Shown here piece by piece: positions 9,519 to 36,014 of a stretch of DNA of 64,000 nt. Within the stretch, counting starts at the first letter, position 1. The number at the start of each line of letters is the position of its first letter. The notes under the pieces are model-generated. The model saw only the letters and a list, made by a program, of their open reading frames with translations. It did no database searches and was not told the DNA's origin. The stretch lies in assembly GCF_000143415.4 (NCBI RefSeq), contig NW_003314261.1, positions 5,606,360 through 5,670,359 on the forward strand. Reading direction: 5' to 3'. The stretch comes from Selaginella moellendorffii (Eukaryota; Plantae; Lycopodiophyta). Made by a program: the position numbers and the translations under genes.

Positions 9519-10157
9519 TCAGATCTTGTCGATCTTGTCCGCCTTCACCACCGGGTTCGCCTTTGCAATCGCGTCCCTCCCCACGGACTTGTAGTCGTAT
9601 GTGCAATTGTGCTTGTCCGAGTAGCGATGGAGAGCGCAGTAGACGTTGCCGCAGCGGCAATTGAATCCCGTCAATCCCACCCTCTTGTTGCAAGCATTGC
9701 AGCGATTCGGCGGTCGCGAGCCGGATGCCTCCGGGGAAGTCACCAAGGCATCAGCCACGCCGTCACCGGACGAGGGATTCATCTCGGAAGAAGTAGTCAC
9801 AGCCTCTGGTAAAACGATCTGCTCGTCCAGTGCCACGCCTTGATCCATGCCAGTAGCGTTGGCGGTGGCGGTGGTGGCGGCGGCGATGGTGGCGGCGGTG
9901 GTGGCGGCGGCGGCTGTAGCGGCGGAAGAATTGTTGTTGGCGTTGGTGTTGTTGATGAGGAGCGGTAGCTGCTCTAGCGCGTTCTTGGCGGTGGACACCT
10001 TGGCCTGTGACAGAACCACGTCCCGGTAGCACTTGGAGCACAGATTCATCGTCGCCTTGCTGCCAAAGAAGCCGCAATTGTTGGCGCACAGAATCGGGCC
10101 CTCGGGTGGCTGGCACCCCGTCTCGTCCTGGTCACACTTCCAGCTCTCCTGTGCCAT
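9519..10157 (-). CDS. SAP: A20/AN1 zinc-finger stress-associated protein
   Basis: MAQESWK..LCANNCGFFGS..NLCSKCY (A20) and NRCNACNKRVGLTGFNCRCGNVYCALHRYSDKHNC (AN1); single coding exon. Confidence 0.96.
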   Translation of the reverse strand: MAQESWKCDQDETGCQPPEGPILCANNCGFFGSKATMNLCSKCYRDVVLSQAKVSTAKNALEQLPLLINNTNANNNSSAATAAAATTAATIAAATTATANATGMDQGVALDEQIVLPEAVTTSSEMNPSSGDGVADALVTSPEASGSRPPNRCNACNKRVGLTGFNCRCGNVYCALHRYSDKHNCTYDYKSVGRDAIAKANPVVKADKIDKI

Positions 10158-10917
10158 CGATCCCACAGGGAAGGAAGCGCTGCTGCTTCTGCTACCACTG
10201 CTACTGCTGCTGCTGCTGTTCCATCCCTCGATCCAGTTGAAGCTACCACCAATCAATTCTCCTCTCGACGTCTCACTCCCAATTCACGAGGTCGAATGCG
10301 TGGGACATCGCTGCGGCGAATGCGTGGGTTAGTTCCAAGGAACCTTTGAGCTCCACACAGCAAGGAAAAAGAGGAAAAAACAACAAAGAACAAAAAAAAA
10401 CCTAAGCACCACAAACAGTTACCAAAAAAATGCAAGACAAAGCGGTGCAATCCACCTCGCAATTCACAAATCTCTGGGACTGGAGCGGCGAGTACCTGGC
10501 GCGGATCTCTCGGGCGGCGCCGCGGCGGAATGGATCGCTGGCGCGCCGCTGGTGGGGGCGCGACTGGAAGAATCCTCTGGCGCCAGAGCAATCTCCAAAC
10601 CCTAGGGCGCGGGCGCGCGCGCTGGCGACGACGACGAGGAAACCCTTGCCCTTGCCCTGGCTATGGCGAATGGAGACGCAAACAAGTAGCCAAGCATATA
10701 TGAAAGAAAGCAGTCTTTTTAGAGGGGAGGGGCATTCTTTCAATACGTGGCATGGGCGGCCATGCTGACTCAGCATGCTCGATCGGAGGGGCGCCGATTC
10801 CTGACCGTTGGATCGTCCGGCATATTCCGCTTGGCTGTGCCGTCAGTTATCCTGACGGAATGTTCGTCTCCCTATTTAGGGCTTTTGGTTGTGGCTAGGG
10901 TTCCTCCGAGCTAGGTC

Positions 10918-27148: not shown

Positions 27149-28407
27149 ATGCTGCTGCGCTTCCGCCTTCGCTCCTCGGCGCTTGGACGATCTCTCCGGC
27201 CCGGGTAAGTAATCTCTTCCAGCGAGCGCTCGATCGATCGATTGATCGGCAGCATGCAAGAGGAAAGAAAATGCCGGTCGATCGATCGAAATATGTGGAA
27301 ATGTAGCAAAGCTTACGCTTTCTTCTTGGCAGGGGTAGCATCGCTGGGTGCGTCTCGCCAGTCGAAGAGCCTCCGCTTCTTCGCTGGATCGCTGGCGGTG
27401 GGATCAGGCTCAAAGGCACTGCGGCCGGGGCGAAGAATGCGGGTAAGAAACCCATCGCTGCCGCTAGCGCGAAGGAGAAGCTCACGGCGACGAAAGTCCA
27501 GGCCCTGGAGTGGGATGGAGAGAGCGTTCTTTGCGACTGTGGAAAGCCCGCGGTTCTCAAGATGAGCAAAGTGAAGAATCCCGGCCTCCGCTACCTTTGC
27601 TGCGCCGAGTCCGTCCCTTGGTTCCTCTTCATCAAGCTGGACGCCGCCCAGAAGAGCAAGCAGCGATGCAAGTTCTTCAGGTGTGATCTAGTTTCTCTCT
27701 CGTTTTCACGTTGGGTTTCCTCCTCGATGATCAGTCGAACGTTTTCGTTTTGTTTTCACAGTTGGATCGACCAGCCTGCCGAGGAAGAGAAGAAAGCTCC
27801 TAGCGGCAAGAAGAGCAAAGCAGCAACATCGGGCGCTAGTTCTGGTGGTAAAGCACAGGCGAAGGAGAAACCGGAAGGAGCTAGCAATGCCGGCAAGGCC
27901 AAGACATCAAGGGCCGTGAAGAAGCCAGGTCCGGACGAGCCCGTGGCCGCTGCCAAGAAAGCAACCGTGAAGAAGGCATTGCCTGTCAAGGATCAAGTTT
28001 CATCGAAGACAGTGGCGACGAAGCCACCCGCTGGAGCAAACAAGAAGAAGGCAGCAGCAACCAAACAGGAGGACAAAGCTGCTGTGGCGAATGCTCCGGC
28101 TGCCGAGAAGACTGTGAAGGAAGCCGCAAAGAGGAAGACGAAGACGGTGGCACCATCGCCGCCAGAGAAGAACGAGGCTGCCGGGGGGGCGGAGAACGTT
28201 GGAGCAGCGGTGAAGAAGACGAGATCAAAGAAGAACGCGGGGGTGAGCGATGCAATCCAAGGAGCACAGAAGAATGACAGTGCCACGGATGGAGCAGCGA
28301 CGAAGAACACCAGATCAAAGAAGAACGCAGGACTGAGCGATGCAATTCAAGGAGAAAAGAAGAGTGGCAGCGCTCCGGATGGAAGTGGAGCGATCCCCAA
28401 GGTTTAG
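27149..28407 (+). CDS. GRF zinc-finger protein with Lys/Ala-rich histone-H1-like tail and putative organellar presequence
   Basis: Exon 1 27149-27204 splices in frame to 27333; CDCGKPAVLKMSKVKNPGLRYLCC..CKFF|SWID; K/A/P-rich tail. Confidence 0.7.
28201..28380 (+). repeat. 90-bp coding tandem duplication (2 copies)
   Basis: GAAVKKTRSKKNAGVSDAIQG.. versus GAATKNTRSKKNAGLSDAIQG.. Confidence 0.9.
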
Positions 28408-28456: not shown

Positions 28457-31399
28457 TTATTTTGATGATCTCAAGACCTTTGTTTTTGTCACCTTTCTTC
28501 CTTCTTTGCCAAATATAATATTTTGACCCACCTTTTTAACTTCATCGGGTCTTAACCTCTTGTGGAGCACCGAGAGGGAGCAGTGGAAGAGCTTTTCCAG
28601 CTCCTCCAGCGTCTCCTCCGCCGATTCCAAAAGATCGACTTCTCCGCGTTCCAGAGCGATGCCAAACTCGGTCTCCGAGCTCAGCTGGAAAATCCTTGCT
28701 TTGCAGTGAGCGACCTCCAAAGATTTGGAGATGGAAGGTGACAGTTCTAGCACCACCTGTGGGAAGAGAAAAGCTTTGATCAAGAGAAACAAATCTAGAC
28801 GGGGTTGCTTACGCTCAGAGCCTTTGTAACAATGCGAGCTCCAGCATCCGAATCAGAAGCATCGTCACGTTTGGATGGTTCGAGTGGCCACAACGCTGCA
28901 GCAAACGCAACACCACTCCCTGCAGATCATACACGCTCAACAAGAGAAAGAGGCAGGGAAATGATACTAACCAGCTATAAGTCCTTTCGCTATAGAAGAA
29001 TTTATGGCTGTTGCTGCTTTTTGCATACGTCCCACCCTCTCATGGAAGTGATCGCGAGTAGCACCGCTAACCTGCGAACTAACAATCAGCACTGCTCGAG
29101 AAAACTCATCTTACCCGCAACTCCAAAACACTGCTCAGGGGCTGATTCTCCGAGACATTACCCGACCGGTAAACAATCACCTCATTCCTGCACATTACAA
29201 GCTGCAAGAAGGCTCAAGCATGTAGAAACTTATAAAAACTGCGAGCTTGATATATTACCTTGTTAGCTCTCCCGCGACAGCTGATAAAATCCGCTTTTTG
29301 ATTATCCACAAGCTTCCAGCAACAACAAATGCAAGTGAGGAAAGGAAAATGAGCAAACGAGACGTCGTTTTACCTCAACACCCAAATAAGTCCGTAAAGC
29401 ATTCAAGCTCTCGTTGCGCACTTTCAGAATCGCAATGTTAGACTGCAACAATCACGATGCTCATCTCAAGATTTATTCGCAAAAGCCACACTTACCTTTA
29501 CATTCTTGAGCATGTGCCCTTTATCCACATTCTTTGCAAAAACTACAAGCCGTGCGTACGCCTGAAAAAACATAGCATAAAGCCTGTTCAAAACGGAACA
29601 ATAGAGCCTTACACCCTGAAAGAGTTTGTGCCAAAAACGGTCTAAGGTAGACGTGTCATTGCACAGCAGAACCGTGTAGTCTTGTGTGACTACCATCTCT
29701 TGATTAAAACTCTTGAGTACTCGCTCAACAGAGATCACCAACGCGTCGAAGCATTCTACAGCATCGTCCTCCGCTATATCATTCTATGCAAAAGAATCCA
29801 AACAGGATAACTGATAGAAAGGAGGACAAGAAAAAAAAACAAATTCTTACATCAACTATGATGTGACGAATTGAGGTTCCAATCTTGACTCTGGCCTGAT
29901 CATCCAGAAGCTCTAGAAATTCCTCTCCCCCGTACAAACGGCCAAGCTGATGATCAAGTAAATCAAACCTGGAGAGAGTAAGCGAACTGTATAAGCTGTA
30001 TTACCGTCAGGAAATGAGATGCAGTGGATGGTACTCTCGCCATTTCCCTCAAACATCCTCGCACTGTCTCGATCGAATCTATGAATCCGTGCCTGAAGCC
30101 GTCTGCTGGAACCCGTGTCATAGCCTCCATGTCAGCGACTGCAGCAGCTATAACATTCTCGGAGTAGGAACCTGCACAATCGTGTATAGCAAAAATACCA
30201 ACATAAGGCACAAGCTTACATGCTAAACTCCGTGCCTGAGAATTTGTGAATGCACTATGCCCAGAACAAAGTTAGCAAGAGACACAGCCGCAAAATAATG
30301 CTGACCTCTCGAACTGAAGACATCTATTGATTTCCTCGTCGTGCTGGCGTTTGAATACCATTCGTAACTTCTGTGCTGTCCATCCATCTTTGCACACTCT
30401 GTCGCCGCAGGCGAGCCGGAGCAGTCCCTCGCAGAGAACCAATGATCCGTCCAGAAGCTTTCCGTCCAAGCCGCTACCATTCCAGAGAAAAACTTCACGC
30501 GCATTCCAGATGTTCGACACCACGTACTTCCCGGCTTTCACTCCGCTAATGTTTCCCTTGTCCGTCAGTAACTTGTTCACGTTCTCTAAGCGATCCTGCA
30601 GATTCTCCTCAGTCCAAGGCCGAGTTTTCGCGAAATAGCCAACGCGATCCGGATCCTTCTTCCTGATCCACTCGGCCCGAAGCTTCTGTTGCTTAGCGAA
30701 GGACGCGAAACCGTCGATGCAGCCGGACGGGTTGACAGAGATGACTCCGTAAGGGTCGAGGACGGACAGCCGCCACCTTGTTGCATCGATGGCAATAAGA
30801 TAGACGGGCCTCGGGGAGAAACCATTTTGCAGATTCTCCAGGCAAAGCTGGTTGCCGTAGGAAGCCAGCTCCATGCGCGTCTTCACGTTCCAATCCTTGA
30901 CACTGTCCGTCTTACAGTCGATGACCGCGTCGTAACGAACATTCTCGGGTGGTATGGTGTCAAAAACCTCGTTGGCGAGTGCCTCCTTGTCCGGGTTGTC
31001 CCAGAAGATCTCATCGTGCTCGCCCTTGAATTCTTCCAGCGCCTTCTTCGAGATTGTCCGCAGCACGAAGTCAGCAGCTAGGCCTGAGTATCCTGGCTCC
31101 AGTCGAAAAAGAAAAGCGCCATCTTGGATCCTGCTTTTAACATGCACCAGGCTTGGAAAGATTTGCTGGAACATAGCTCGGTAGTTGGATTCTTGGAAGG
31201 ATGGGAATGCGGAATGGAGGCAGCGGAGTGGGCCGAAAACCGCGAAAGCCCTGACACAGCGGGGATCCATGACGGAGGAGAACTTGTCCATGGGGTTGCC
31301 GCTCTGCCAGGACCTCTGCGTCATGAACGGGAAGACCTTCAAACTCGAAGGATTTGGTATGCTGCCACCTCTTCCCCCTGTGTCGCCCTCACTATCCAT
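28457..31399 (-). CDS. Chimeric protein: PD-(D/E)XK nuclease-like N-terminal domain plus degenerate GroEL/Cpn60-like domain
   Basis: Exons 31399-30306, 30254-30220, 30171-30005 and 29946-29851, plus further short exons to the stop at 28457, join in frame through GT-AG introns. Nuclease motifs E70, AD110, D161-C-K163, ELASY. Cpn60-like segments VNKLL..GVKAGKYVV and LRVSGAT..KGLIAGSGVAF. Confidence 0.7.
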
Positions 31400-31794
31400 T
31401 CCTAATATACCCTAATGAAACGGGCAAATAAAGGTTGGAGAGTCAAGGTTGTATTGAATGATAAAGGTTGAGGTTTATAAGCCCTTCCTAAAAATTTTTA
31501 TTGCAGTGCAAACTTTGGATTGACGCTCTTCTTTTTCAGGCAAATCTAACTGGTCATGGGAGGAAATCAAATGCCGTTCGCAAGTGAGTGAGAGAGGCCT
31601 GCTTTGCAGAGATAACGGTTGCGTATCGGAAAAGACTAAGTAATGGAAAACATATAGTAATAGATACCATGTATATATCTATATGAAAACAAGGTGGGAA
31701 AACAGGATCGCAACACTACCAACGCCTTGTCTCTCTCAAAATTCTCGGTGAAGTTCTTAGCAGACTTGGCTTTTAAAAAGTTAGGAAATATATC

Positions 31795-34700
31795 TCAGTT
31801 GATTTTGGGCTTTAATCTTCTCGGCCACAATGCATACCGCAGCATGACAGCCACCATCGCAAGCCCAAAACAGGCAAACAGCTCCGTTGGAACATGAAGG
31901 TGTCCGTGTTGGGTACAATGTAAGGGGTGCAGCGCGGTGATTATCGCATCTGTTTGCTGTGTTAATCTGAGAATACCACCATTGTAACTTAGTCTATAGA
32001 AGATGGTTTCAATGAATTTCTACCTCTCAGACGCATGTCTCAGTGATGAGAGTGACCGAACAGCGTCGTCGAATCTTGCTTTCCCAACGTTGATAGAAAT
32101 CTGGAATGATTTGGGAGCGGGCGTCAGCTGGCTAGTTCTATAACTGTAAAAGATTCAAGTGACTCACTTGTCTCCATATGCCCACAACTGAATTGTATTC
32201 TTGCAGTAACTGACGCTCCATCGACTTAAATGGTCTGAACACTCTCTCGTCTGCAAAAGTAGAACCTCTTAAGCACCTGTGGAAGCAACTAAACAGAAGA
32301 CTTGTCTTACGGGTTGGCTCTTTGGACAGTCGTTCAAACACCGCGTTCATCTCTTGCACCGATTCGTCCAGAGCGGAGACGATGTAACTTCTGGCTATTG
32401 CGTCCGTGTGGAGAGACGATATCGTGTAGCCGCTTGAGGTGCCAGAAAATGGATGGTTTCCAGCGGACCACGTCCAGTCCTAGCCGGAGCAAGATCAGTT
32501 TTAAGGTATCACGAAACCAGGGAGGTTCTCACCTCGTCGGCATTATCGTGTGCATGGCTATAAGTCAGGTGTGTTGGCATCAAGCCGGACAAGTGCTCCG
32601 CGACGGCAGCAACGGCGGCTTTGATAGGTGAGCTGGAGCGATGATATAAAACATATCTATAGCTAGATGTAAGCACGAACTTACCTTGCATCCCAATCGA
32701 TTGATTTGCCATTGCATTGTAGGTGGCTTGGCCACGATGATTGAGCAGACTGCATAACAATAACCATATCCGGAAGTGCCTTTGCCAAATAGTGCTTGTC
32801 AATAAACACAGACTCATCCGATCTGATGAACCAGAACACTGGCACTTCCAGCGTCGACTTCGGAACTGAAAACAACAAACCGAGCGAATCGAGTGAAAAG
32901 AACGTAAGAACTGTGCTACCTGATCTCGGACTTCTGGCGGTTAACTGTTGGAGCTGGTGTTGGAGAATGATCGAGTCTAGATAGTTACGAGTTGATTGGC
33001 TGTGTGCGCCATTCATTTGCAAGACAGGTATAACCGCGGCACGGCGCGCAACTGAGAATGCCATTGCCAGGGCCGGATCCTCAGAAAGTCCTATCCTGAA
33101 ACGTTCAGAGTTTCAGTAGAACGTCAAACAAGTAAAACACTTCTTACAAGTGAACATTGTATTGGAATGTCTGGGACGGAAGTCTGAGTGTTGAAATCGC
33201 ATCCTTTACTTGGGAAATGTCTAAAGGCAGCAAACCGATATGTCTAGTTCTCTGAAAAAGAAAAAAAAAACAAGTAGCCCGAGCAATGAAATAGAGCCAA
33301 GTGAGAACCCATACCTCTTCAGTGATTACGTATATTTGAATAGAAACTTTATCATAGTAATGGAATGCTCCTTCTGCTGTAGAAGGGGTGATTACATGTT
33401 TCATACCCGCTGTTAGCGTTGCGCCGAGATGAGCAAGAAAAGAATCCCTGGCAACAGAGAAGTTTTGTACGTGCTGCAAAAGCGTGATGTAAGAAGAATT
33501 GCGGATTCAATATGCAATACCTCGTGGATGTCTCCAAATAGATTCCATTTTTCTACACGTTGCAACACTGCTAGGGCCTTTTTTTGATGCTCTTCGTCAT
33601 GACTTTGAGATCGCAACGAATCTAACTCGTCTTTAAGATCGTCCATCCTCTCTTGCAATTCTAAACAACACATCATAGATTAGAAACTAGTAACCAAAAC
33701 TATAAATAAGTTTATTCACCTTGGCATAAAGCGATTTTTATCTTCCGGCCCCGGCAATGCTTTTCTGCGAACATGTCATAAACATCAACTTCCGNNNNNN
33801 NNNNNNNNNNNNNNNNNNNNNNNNNNNNNNNNNNNNNNNNNNNNNNNNNNNNNNNNNNNNNNNNNNNNNNNNNNNNNNNNNNNNNNNNNNNNNNNNNNNN
33901 NNNNNNNNNNNNNNNNNNNNNNNNNNNNNNNNNNNNNNNNNNNNNNNNNNNNNNNNNNNNNNCGTTAGAAGTTCTCTAAGAATCATATCTGATCATTACC
34001 TTCACCGTTGACCGCTAAACTACCGAAGAGCTTCTCTACGGACGGCAAGCTCCCAACCGTACGCACGCCTACGCCACCAACTGTTGGTCCCCAATGGAAT
34101 GGACCGGCCGTCAAGTCTATGAATGCCCATCTAAAACAAAAGGGAAAGATATTTCAGCACGTTAAGTCGACAGGTAGCACTCTTACCGCCCTTGACCAGT
34201 CCACGTATCAACGAGGCATTCTTCTACCGTCTTGAATGCGTCTGGGTTTTTCAATGTTCTTTTCAAAGAAAAGGCTAAGTCATGGTTTGATTCCGAGAGA
34301 ACCTGCCGAGTTCTGTTAATAACAGTGTGGTAAGAAAACAGGGACGTAAGCAGCTTACCTGCTGAGTTTTCATAAACAACAACTCTTCTGAGGTTTTTGA
34401 TTTCATTGACGCCTCGATTGACTTGAGTGCATCTGTATACTTCTGAGTCCATTGTTTCTGCCAATGGACGAGGATGTTAGCATTTAAATTAAGAATACAA
34501 CGTTACCATGTCCATGTGTTGAGAGGATGTCCAAGAGAACTTCTGCCTTGGATGTTTTTCATGTGAAGGTTTTCTTAACTTCTCGATGTCTGTCAGCACA
34601 GGTTTCAGGATTTCGTCTGAAGTACAAGACAGAAACTAACCTAGTGGATTCCGCTGCTTTGTTGTCTTCAACGACTTCAAGTTGGAATTCTGAAAACAAG

Positions 34701-36014
34701 AGCATCAGAAAAGCAAACGACCAAGGCGGAACTTACTTTAGCAACAAGTTTTAATTCCGAAATGGACAGCCCGCGCCTAAAACATATCTGATTATCGAAT
34801 TTACCAACCAGCTAAAACTATTACCTGTAGCCGTAAGTCTTTCTGCTCTCGTCACGCTTAGGGTTCAGAACATAGATGTTATATGCATCTTCCAATTGCA
34901 AATAGTGCGTTAAGCTCTCGAATAAGTATGACATGCTATCCATGTCCACTTGCCAAGTAACTTCAGAATCTGGCCTGCCAAAACGAACAGTAATCTAATG
35001 CAAAATATGACAATGGAGAACCTTGAGTCACTGGTATCTTCCCTCCGGGAGAGAACTTTGATGGCGTACTCAAAAAGCTTAGTTACTTCAGTTCCCATAT
35101 CGATAGTATGCACGGAATAGCTGGATTAAAGAAGGGAGTTATGAACAAACAGCTCAAGCAAAAAAATGACCGACCTTAGTCTCTCATCTCACAATATACT
35201 TACTTGTAGTGCGTATAGCTAACAAGAGGGAGGTGCGGCCTCGGGGTACCATCAGCTCCGACCTTATAAAAGGGTGTAAGATCGTCACCGAGTTGAGGTA
35301 TCCGCGTGTGTTCCAAAACATGATCAATGTTTGTAAACCAGCGCTCCATCTCGTCCTCTCGCAGCTTCACATCTGTAAAACCACGCGAGTTTAAAATAAC
35401 GTACTCAAAGCCTGCTGTCGATTACCATGGTTTCCATGGCCGTCAAAGCCGATGAAGACGAAGGTAATTGGAACAGGTAGATAGATCGCATCGATTTCAG
35501 TCATGTTTAGATACTTGGCAATTCTTCCTACAAGAACACGTATGCGCAAAACGTAAGAACAGAGAGTTTTTCCACTTCTTTTTACCGGAGCCAGTGAAAT
35601 TTGCAAGAGCTTTCTTGCTCAAATCGTGGGACTCGAATCGCTCGAAGTCGTCATAGCCTGCAGTTATCCATAAGAACCAATACACGAACAACAAACATGG
35701 ATATTTCTTACTTCTCCACATCAGAGTGTCGGTCCAGAACTTTTTGGAGCGCGCCATGTCGAAAAGAGAGAGCACCGAAGTCTTGGATTTGAACCTAGAG
35801 GATGTGGTATACACTGCTTGACCCGAAACATCCTGGATCACAGCAAAGAAGATGGAGTGAATCGAGATTTAAGCAGCATTTTCCTCCAAATTCTATGTTC
35901 TTCGCTGGCCCTACTCTAGATTCGACATACCTCGGGAGCGCAGAGCAGAATGCCGAGGAGGAGGCCGATCAAAGCGCGCATCCACGCAGCGCCATAGCGG
36001 CGATCCAGCGCCAT
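31795..36014 (-). CDS. KNS3/SPOT1 (At5g58100-family) secretory-pathway membrane protein homolog
   Basis: Signal peptide; SVLSLF..KKFW, IAKYLNMTEIDAIYLPVPITFVFIGFDGHGN, ERWFTNIDHVLEHTRIP; C-terminal TM plus PRRLKPKIN*; many exons; spans an assembly gap. Confidence 0.82.
33795..33962. other. Assembly gap (N run)
   Basis: 168 N bases inside the KNS3-like gene. Confidence 1.

Follow-up and report, generated by a model that had tools for sequence, protein, structure and literature searches.

Two described systems stand close to the locus reported here. One is the group I chaperonin Cpn60/GroEL (PF00118), whose chain runs through its domains in the order equatorial-intermediate-apical-intermediate-equatorial. 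The other is the PD-(D/E)XK nuclease superfamily, with its HsdR-N-like members and the restriction endonuclease (REase) modules of eukaryotes; in Crinkler effectors such modules are coupled to kinases or NTPases (PMC5289972). We analysed 64,000 nucleotides (nt) of the genome of the spikemoss Selaginella moellendorffii (assembly GCF_000143415.4, contig NW_003314261.1, positions 5,606,360 to 5,670,359), called the window below. On its minus strand, at 28457-31399, an intronless module with a nuclease-like motif lies directly upstream of a chain of short exons that resembles a degenerate group I chaperonin. This observation on the sequence is real and beyond chance, and the fusion of the two parts is an existing automatic prediction without RNA proof. 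The reading that we favour, tentatively and at slightly less than an even chance, is a single lineage-specific chimeric gene in which the two parts are fused by splicing, probably with low efficiency.

The open reading frame (ORF) that carries the module, 375 amino acids (aa) long, was confirmed on the minus strand at 30272-31399 in the ORF list of the window. An earlier note on this DNA had proposed that the frame need not end at its stop codon, and every element it named was present: a donor GT at 30305/30304, a CTAAC at 30275-30271 and an acceptor AG at 30256/30255. These bound a 51-nt segment (putative intron 1, 30255-30305, GTCAGC...CTAAC...ATAG) that holds the TAA of the ORF at 30272-30274. 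The T content of the segment is 41%, compared with 34-54% in the local introns and 22% in the ORF, and its donor is the best GT within the last 530 nt of the ORF. The body of the ORF in front of it, exon 1 (30306-31399, residues 1-364 of the fused reading), is intronless. The ORF and exon 2 (30005-30254) have a common reading frame, and therefore one stop codon alone, the TAA, separates the ORF from the next open stretch. The proposed in-frame chain of short exons down to 28457, with matching phases, was also borne out: the in-phase reconstruction, of 11 exons and 2394 nt, reads through 797 codons without an internal stop, and all ten of its introns are GT..AG introns of 43-67 nt.

The 15 kb around the locus are 100% identical to scaffold GL377565.1 of assembly GCA_000143415.2, and the locus has already been annotated there as the 670-aa hypothetical protein SELMODRAFT_402960 (EFJ38778.1, UniProt D8QNL1). 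This model uses the 30305/30255 junction and shares its N-terminal 364 residues with our reconstruction. The in-frame fusion of the earlier note is possible and had been used in this model; no RNA was found across the 30306/30254 junction, nor any reads over the ORF. We found no publication that names the locus tag or its accessions, and an exact look-up of the 375-aa product in public assemblies returned no record.

The downstream exons were compared with protein families, the 797-aa reconstruction by local scripts and, in the family libraries, SELMODRAFT_402960 and separate exon pieces. Pfam and NCBIfam (E<=10) gave no match for SELMODRAFT_402960, for its residues 365-610 or for eight exon pieces, and phmmer against PDB gave a Cpn60 match at E 0.6 and nothing better. 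Because curated profiles miss the downstream half, a small GroEL profile was built with genes of five bacteria (E. coli, Trichormus, Sinorhizobium, Azospirillum and Ralstonia). Against this hidden Markov model (HMM), the C-terminal part after splicing (433 aa) scored 25.3 bits, compared with at most 17.7 bits in 1000 shuffles. With hhalign, residues 2-412 of the same part aligned with GroEL 65-537 over 388 columns (probability 72%, E 3.5e-5), and both hhalign and the HMM placed it collinearly along the Cpn60 domain order. In a six-frame scan of all 64 kb, the best two of 2782 fragments were adjacent exons in the correct order, namely 29110-28970 (profile positions 380-414), which ranked first, followed by 28926-28798 (413-448), which ranked second. 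The protein-language-model neighbours of SELMODRAFT_402960 residues 365-610 were Cpn60_TCP1 clusters in 99 of 100 cases.

Identity of the Cpn60-like part to GroEL is about 22%. Pairwise comparison was significant for the last third alone (z 4-7.6), with z values of 7.6 for an alphaproteobacterial GroEL, 4.8 for E. coli and 3.9 for a cyanobacterium; the best value, with the alphaproteobacterial protein, therefore hints at the mitochondrial HSP60 lineage. A word-indexed homologue search with the Cpn60-like region returned that region alone. Taken as sequence evidence, these comparisons support the derivation of the downstream exons from a group I chaperonin, in degenerate form. By hhalign the homology begins at the second residue of exon 2, immediately behind the acceptor. 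Since the Cpn60-like part starts at exon 2 (about GroEL residue 65), some 64 mature N-terminal residues, among them part of the nucleotide pocket, are missing, plus any transit peptide. The earlier note had the module replace the transit peptide of an intron-rich paralogue. The intron-rich paralogue and the intronless module were found as described, and the loss takes in the mature residues as well.

RNA evidence was drawn from three raw RNA-seq runs, sampled at about 9.2 million reads each, and from contigs assembled for a fourth. The fourth-run contigs, whose joints carry CT..AC ends, that is, GT..AG on the minus strand, confirmed introns 30004-29947, 29850-29784, 29114-29072 and 28971-28920, four of the ten. 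These four joints demonstrate that the Cpn60-like exons are transcribed and spliced, at a low depth of about 3. The joint 30005/29946 fixes the 3' end of exon 2. Both joints flanking exon 3 (29851-29946) are in the contigs. For exon 4 (29613-29783) a contig is continuous over 29662-29783 and is joined to 29851. Exon 8 (29115-29201), placed by the reconstruction, is covered over 29113-29196 with a joint to about 29070. Exon 9 (28972-29071), the best-conserved Cpn60 stretch (GroEL about 378-414), has both flanking introns in a contig, and exon 10 (28813-28919; GroEL about 413-448) is covered by a contig over 28878-28921. The in-phase reconstruction together with hhalign places exon 5 (29496-29561), which holds the region of GroEL 'PLLIIAEDVE', exon 6 (29374-29442), exon 7 (29259-29312) and exon 11 (28457-28756; GroEL about 449-537), which ends in the stop TAA at 28457-28459 and has no RNA coverage.

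The annotated model differs from this reconstruction in several ways. SELMODRAFT_402960 skips exon 3, cuts exon 4, drops 48 nt of exon 2, and skips the exon at 28919-28813, after which it reads the last exon out of frame. The RNA contigs contradict it at three downstream places, namely exon 3, the interior of exon 4 and exon 10. Several exons are wrong in the public gene model, which can be corrected. The 48 nt that it drops from exon 2 (30172-30219, minus strand) form an in-frame candidate intron, GTAAGC...TGTGCAG, with 42% T. Its removal would delete 'DCAG', which aligns with GroEL 'DAAG' ahead of the degenerate GDGTTT loop; RNA coverage of the candidate is none, and both forms are possible.

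We then turn to the upstream module. HMMER against 1.84 billion representative proteins gave three matches, one of which is the Selaginella model itself. The second is a 289-aa model from the fern Adiantum capillus-veneris (KAI5063774.1, E 2.7e-12), and the third is a 417-aa protein (E 2.6e-5) encoded at 439-1692 of a 1971-nt Logan contig of run SRR8210169, for which we found no paper. The contig is most likely a transcript, because its ORF is uninterrupted and has flanks. BLASTP aligned residues 155-354 of the spikemoss ORF with the 417-aa relative at E 9e-15. With 26-29% identity to its relatives the ORF is still intact, and an EGLLR motif near its residue 324 is conserved. A word-indexed homologue search with the ORF alone gave no match, the same kind of protein search with a three-sequence module profile recovered SELMODRAFT_402960 and the 417-aa relative and nothing further, and metagenome and viral contigs scanned with the module profile held no relatives. 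The module is therefore very rare, given three HMMER matches and empty further profile scans. In Selaginella it has no introns, and in the fern no interruption falls within the matched stretch; no terminal repeats or target-site duplications were found around the intronless ORF. On the fern chromosome CM043961.1 (excerpt positions 9575-10651), the N-terminal part of the module is found in a different frame shortly before the annotated start; the fern copy is probably frameshifted, mis-modelled or decayed.

The nearest protein-language-model neighbours of the spikemoss ORF are fungal hypothetical-protein clusters (0.84-0.79), some with DUF6826 or with the N-terminal part of Pkinase_fungal (FunK1) proteins. 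Fungal clusters of this kind are also nearest to the 417-aa relative (0.95-0.94; 86 of 100 matches), the top ones being large unnamed basidiomycete clusters. This likeness is one of embedding alone, with no alignment or E-value behind it, and HMMER and Pfam make no connection. Fungi may be a reservoir of the module, or the SRR8210169 contig may be of fungal origin itself. The basidiomycete neighbours raise the idea of a transfer of the module between fungi and early vascular plants. Whatever the status of the fusion, the ORF represents a plant gene family that is very rare, carries a nuclease-like motif and has look-alikes in fungi.

Whether the module is a nuclease was judged from its motifs and from fold searches. 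A (D/E)xK motif is formed by D161 and K163, a (Q/E)xxxY motif by E176-Y180. A hydrophobic strand that ends in (D/E)xK, a helix with (Q/E)xxxY and a further hydrophobic strand follow one another as would be expected of strand 3, helix 2 and strand 4 in a PD-(D/E)XK core. In the BLASTP alignment, VIDCK of the ORF falls on IIESK of the 417-aa relative, and the (E/Q)xxxY helix, about 14 residues after (D/E)xK and followed by a hydrophobic strand, is aligned between the two proteins as well. This much of the proposed PD-(D/E)XK signature is aligned with a homologue; the upstream acidic residues E70 and D110, which the signature also included, lie outside any significant alignment, and at the (D/E)xK position the fern protein as annotated lacks the lysine. 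The neighbours of an ESM Atlas model, enriched in HSDR_N and PDDEXK_12, also include HSDR_N_2 and DUF7149, at template-modelling (TM) scores of 0.36-0.44, the model itself having a predicted local distance difference test (pLDDT) value of 0.42, and the feature neighbours of the 417-aa relative include one HSDR_N cluster at 0.89. The fold that the earlier note expected profile and structure searches to recover did not come up in them: Pfam, NCBIfam, PADLOC and PDB searches with the ORF and its relatives gave no relevant nuclease match, AlphaFold2 with 3-sequence alignments reached pLDDT 34.8 with the Selaginella sequence first and 41.1 with the 417-aa relative first, and Foldseek on the pLDDT 34.8 model was uninformative. 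On balance we put a nuclease-like fold of the module at about even odds.

How the two parts relate was weighed between one gene and two. The ORF stop lies 17 nt from the exon-2 acceptor, so a promoter or first exon belonging to the Cpn60-like part alone has no space outside the ORF. Upstream of exon 2 the ORF supplies the only in-frame start, and the next in-frame ATG comes about 42 codons into exon 2. That a frame of 433 codons has stayed open over ten introns, with identity to GroEL down at about 22%, argues for translation, now or formerly, which needs a start. One protein is also favoured by the beginning of the Cpn60 homology right behind the acceptor, by the intron-like T content of the 51 nt and the rank of their donor, and by the use of the junction in the annotated model. 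Two other starts were tried and rejected: a start at ATG 30323 used independently through the same donor runs into a stop, and removal of the 48-nt candidate intron yields an out-of-frame ATG.

The strongest rival holds that the locus yields two separate products and that the fusion is an artefact of gene prediction, a possibility that we take seriously while expecting it to be wrong. The ORF would then give its 375-aa protein, and a 5'-truncated Cpn60 paralogue would be transcribed on its own, beginning within the ORF or right after it, and translated, if at all, from the internal ATG 30130 into about 390 aa. A number of observations favour this rival or weigh against a single chimeric gene. 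Both relatives lack a chaperonin part, the transcript-encoded 417-aa protein ending about 25 residues past the shared region, the fern model about 65, and at the fern locus nothing Cpn60-like was found within 10 kb downstream; the module is joined to a chaperonin in no other relative found. The splice signals of intron 1 are the weakest in the gene (donor GTCAGC 5.6, acceptor 0.9, compared with donors of 5.8-10.8 and acceptors of 6.8-13.2 at the other junctions, on a scoring matrix trained on nine sites). The ORF's own stop comes 11 codons past the putative donor, and the T-rich 51 nt would suit a 3' untranslated region equally well. In the three RNA-seq runs there were zero reads over 28480-31570, while both neighbouring genes were covered. 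The fourth-run contigs cover three stretches of the Cpn60-like exons and none of the 1.1-kb ORF, and no read or contig in the four runs falls on the ORF or on the 30306/30254 junction. The annotated fusion, for its part, looks like an automatic model, which the contigs contradict downstream. Set against the two-product view are the missing room for a separate first exon and some 40 codons at the head of exon 2, which are open in the frame of the ORF and align with GroEL 65-105 but have no start codon of their own; moreover, gaps in low-depth contig coverage prove nothing.

In the samples seen the locus is expressed at a very low level, as would fit a gene that is condition-specific or dying. 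We regard it as unlikely that one half of the locus, or both, is a decaying relic, in other words that an HSP60 duplicate, and perhaps the module gene too, is dying, is transcribed as mere background and has no function at the protein level. The absence of reads from three deep runs and a contig depth of 3 elsewhere are consistent with such decay, as are the loss of all ATPase residues and of the N-terminal 64 residues, the lack of detectable orthologues of the Cpn60-like part and the seemingly frameshifted module copy of the fern. However, 797 open codons and ten intact GT-AG introns, four of them seen spliced, at about 22% identity are hard to obtain by neutral decay, and the ORF has stayed intact at its distance from the relatives.

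The weakest alternative, a full-length Cpn60 that starts at about ORF residue 255, with the nuclease module replacing the transit peptide alone, draws on a short look-alike of the GroEL N-terminus (VNKLL...GKYVV) and on the 543 aa from residue 255 to the end, near the 548 aa of GroEL, but is very hard to maintain, since ORF residues 255-364 reach an hhalign probability of 0.9% against the GroEL profile with best local alignments at scattered, inconsistent GroEL positions and are conserved in both the fern and the 417-aa relatives, neither of which has a chaperonin part, and since no six-frame fragment anywhere in the window matches GroEL 1-64. The collinearity with Cpn60 that the earlier note had traced from residue ~255 onward accordingly stands for exons 2-11 and fails for ORF residues ~255-364.

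The genes on either side of the locus are both expressed. Upstream on the same strand lies a gene for an 887-aa DUF7906 protein (31795-36014, minus strand). Its coverage falls to zero at about 31690, some 300 nt before the ATG of the ORF, and its read-through therefore does not explain the locus. The convergent neighbour on the other side (27562-28407, plus strand) encodes a lysine/alanine-rich protein, with an open frame of 281 aa and an annotated model of 349 aa, and contains two 90-nt tandem copies at 28200-28379 with 83% identity. All four runs show its expression, with reads that carry several single-nucleotide polymorphisms relative to the assembly. These reads extend to about 28470 and so touch the 3' end of the last Cpn60-like exon.

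If the locus is one chimeric gene, its origin and use could be pictured as follows. An HSP60 paralogue would have lost its 5' exons and acquired an intronless module gene of about 360 aa upstream. Transcripts that retain the 51-nt segment would give the stand-alone 375-aa protein; transcripts from which it is removed would give a 797-aa protein with the module first and a Cpn60-derived domain (GroEL 65-537) behind it. The effector would be the module, provided that it is a nuclease, and the Cpn60-derived domain would be the structural, oligomerising or binding part. A further step, that the 797-aa protein is made under a condition outside the samples and that an ATPase-dead scaffold of HSP60 origin, forming rings or binding clients, gates or concentrates a PD-(D/E)XK nuclease, is speculative and in our judgement improbable. 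Were it true, the spikemoss would have a lycophyte-specific, oligomer-controlled nuclease for defence or cell death, with an architecture undescribed in any organism.

As for the Crinkler effectors, Pfam found no NTPase or kinase domain, and a Crinkler header domain or secretion signal was not seen, no search aimed at it having been made. Compared with Cpn60/GroEL, the strongest shared stretch is equatorial, at 378-449, and several features differ. The GDGTTT loop (D87, T89-T91) reads AGSYSEN in the spikemoss domain, the position of the catalytic D398 is K, and GGG 414-416 is GSG. There are deletions around APGFGD and GroEL 345-372, and residues 1-64, with T30-P33, K51 and D52, are missing. 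With its nucleotide-binding and catalytic residues gone and its N-terminal segment missing, the domain is not an ATP-driven foldase; if translated, its sequence would allow at most a scaffold, oligomerisation or binding domain. Independently of the fusion, one finding here is an HSP60 paralogue with a dead ATPase whose exons are spliced and whose reading frame has stayed open. A real fusion would be among the rare instances of a group I chaperonin reused as a non-catalytic domain, in an early vascular plant whose immune and cell-death machinery is poorly known, and the chaperonin would be the first seen joined to a nuclease-like module.

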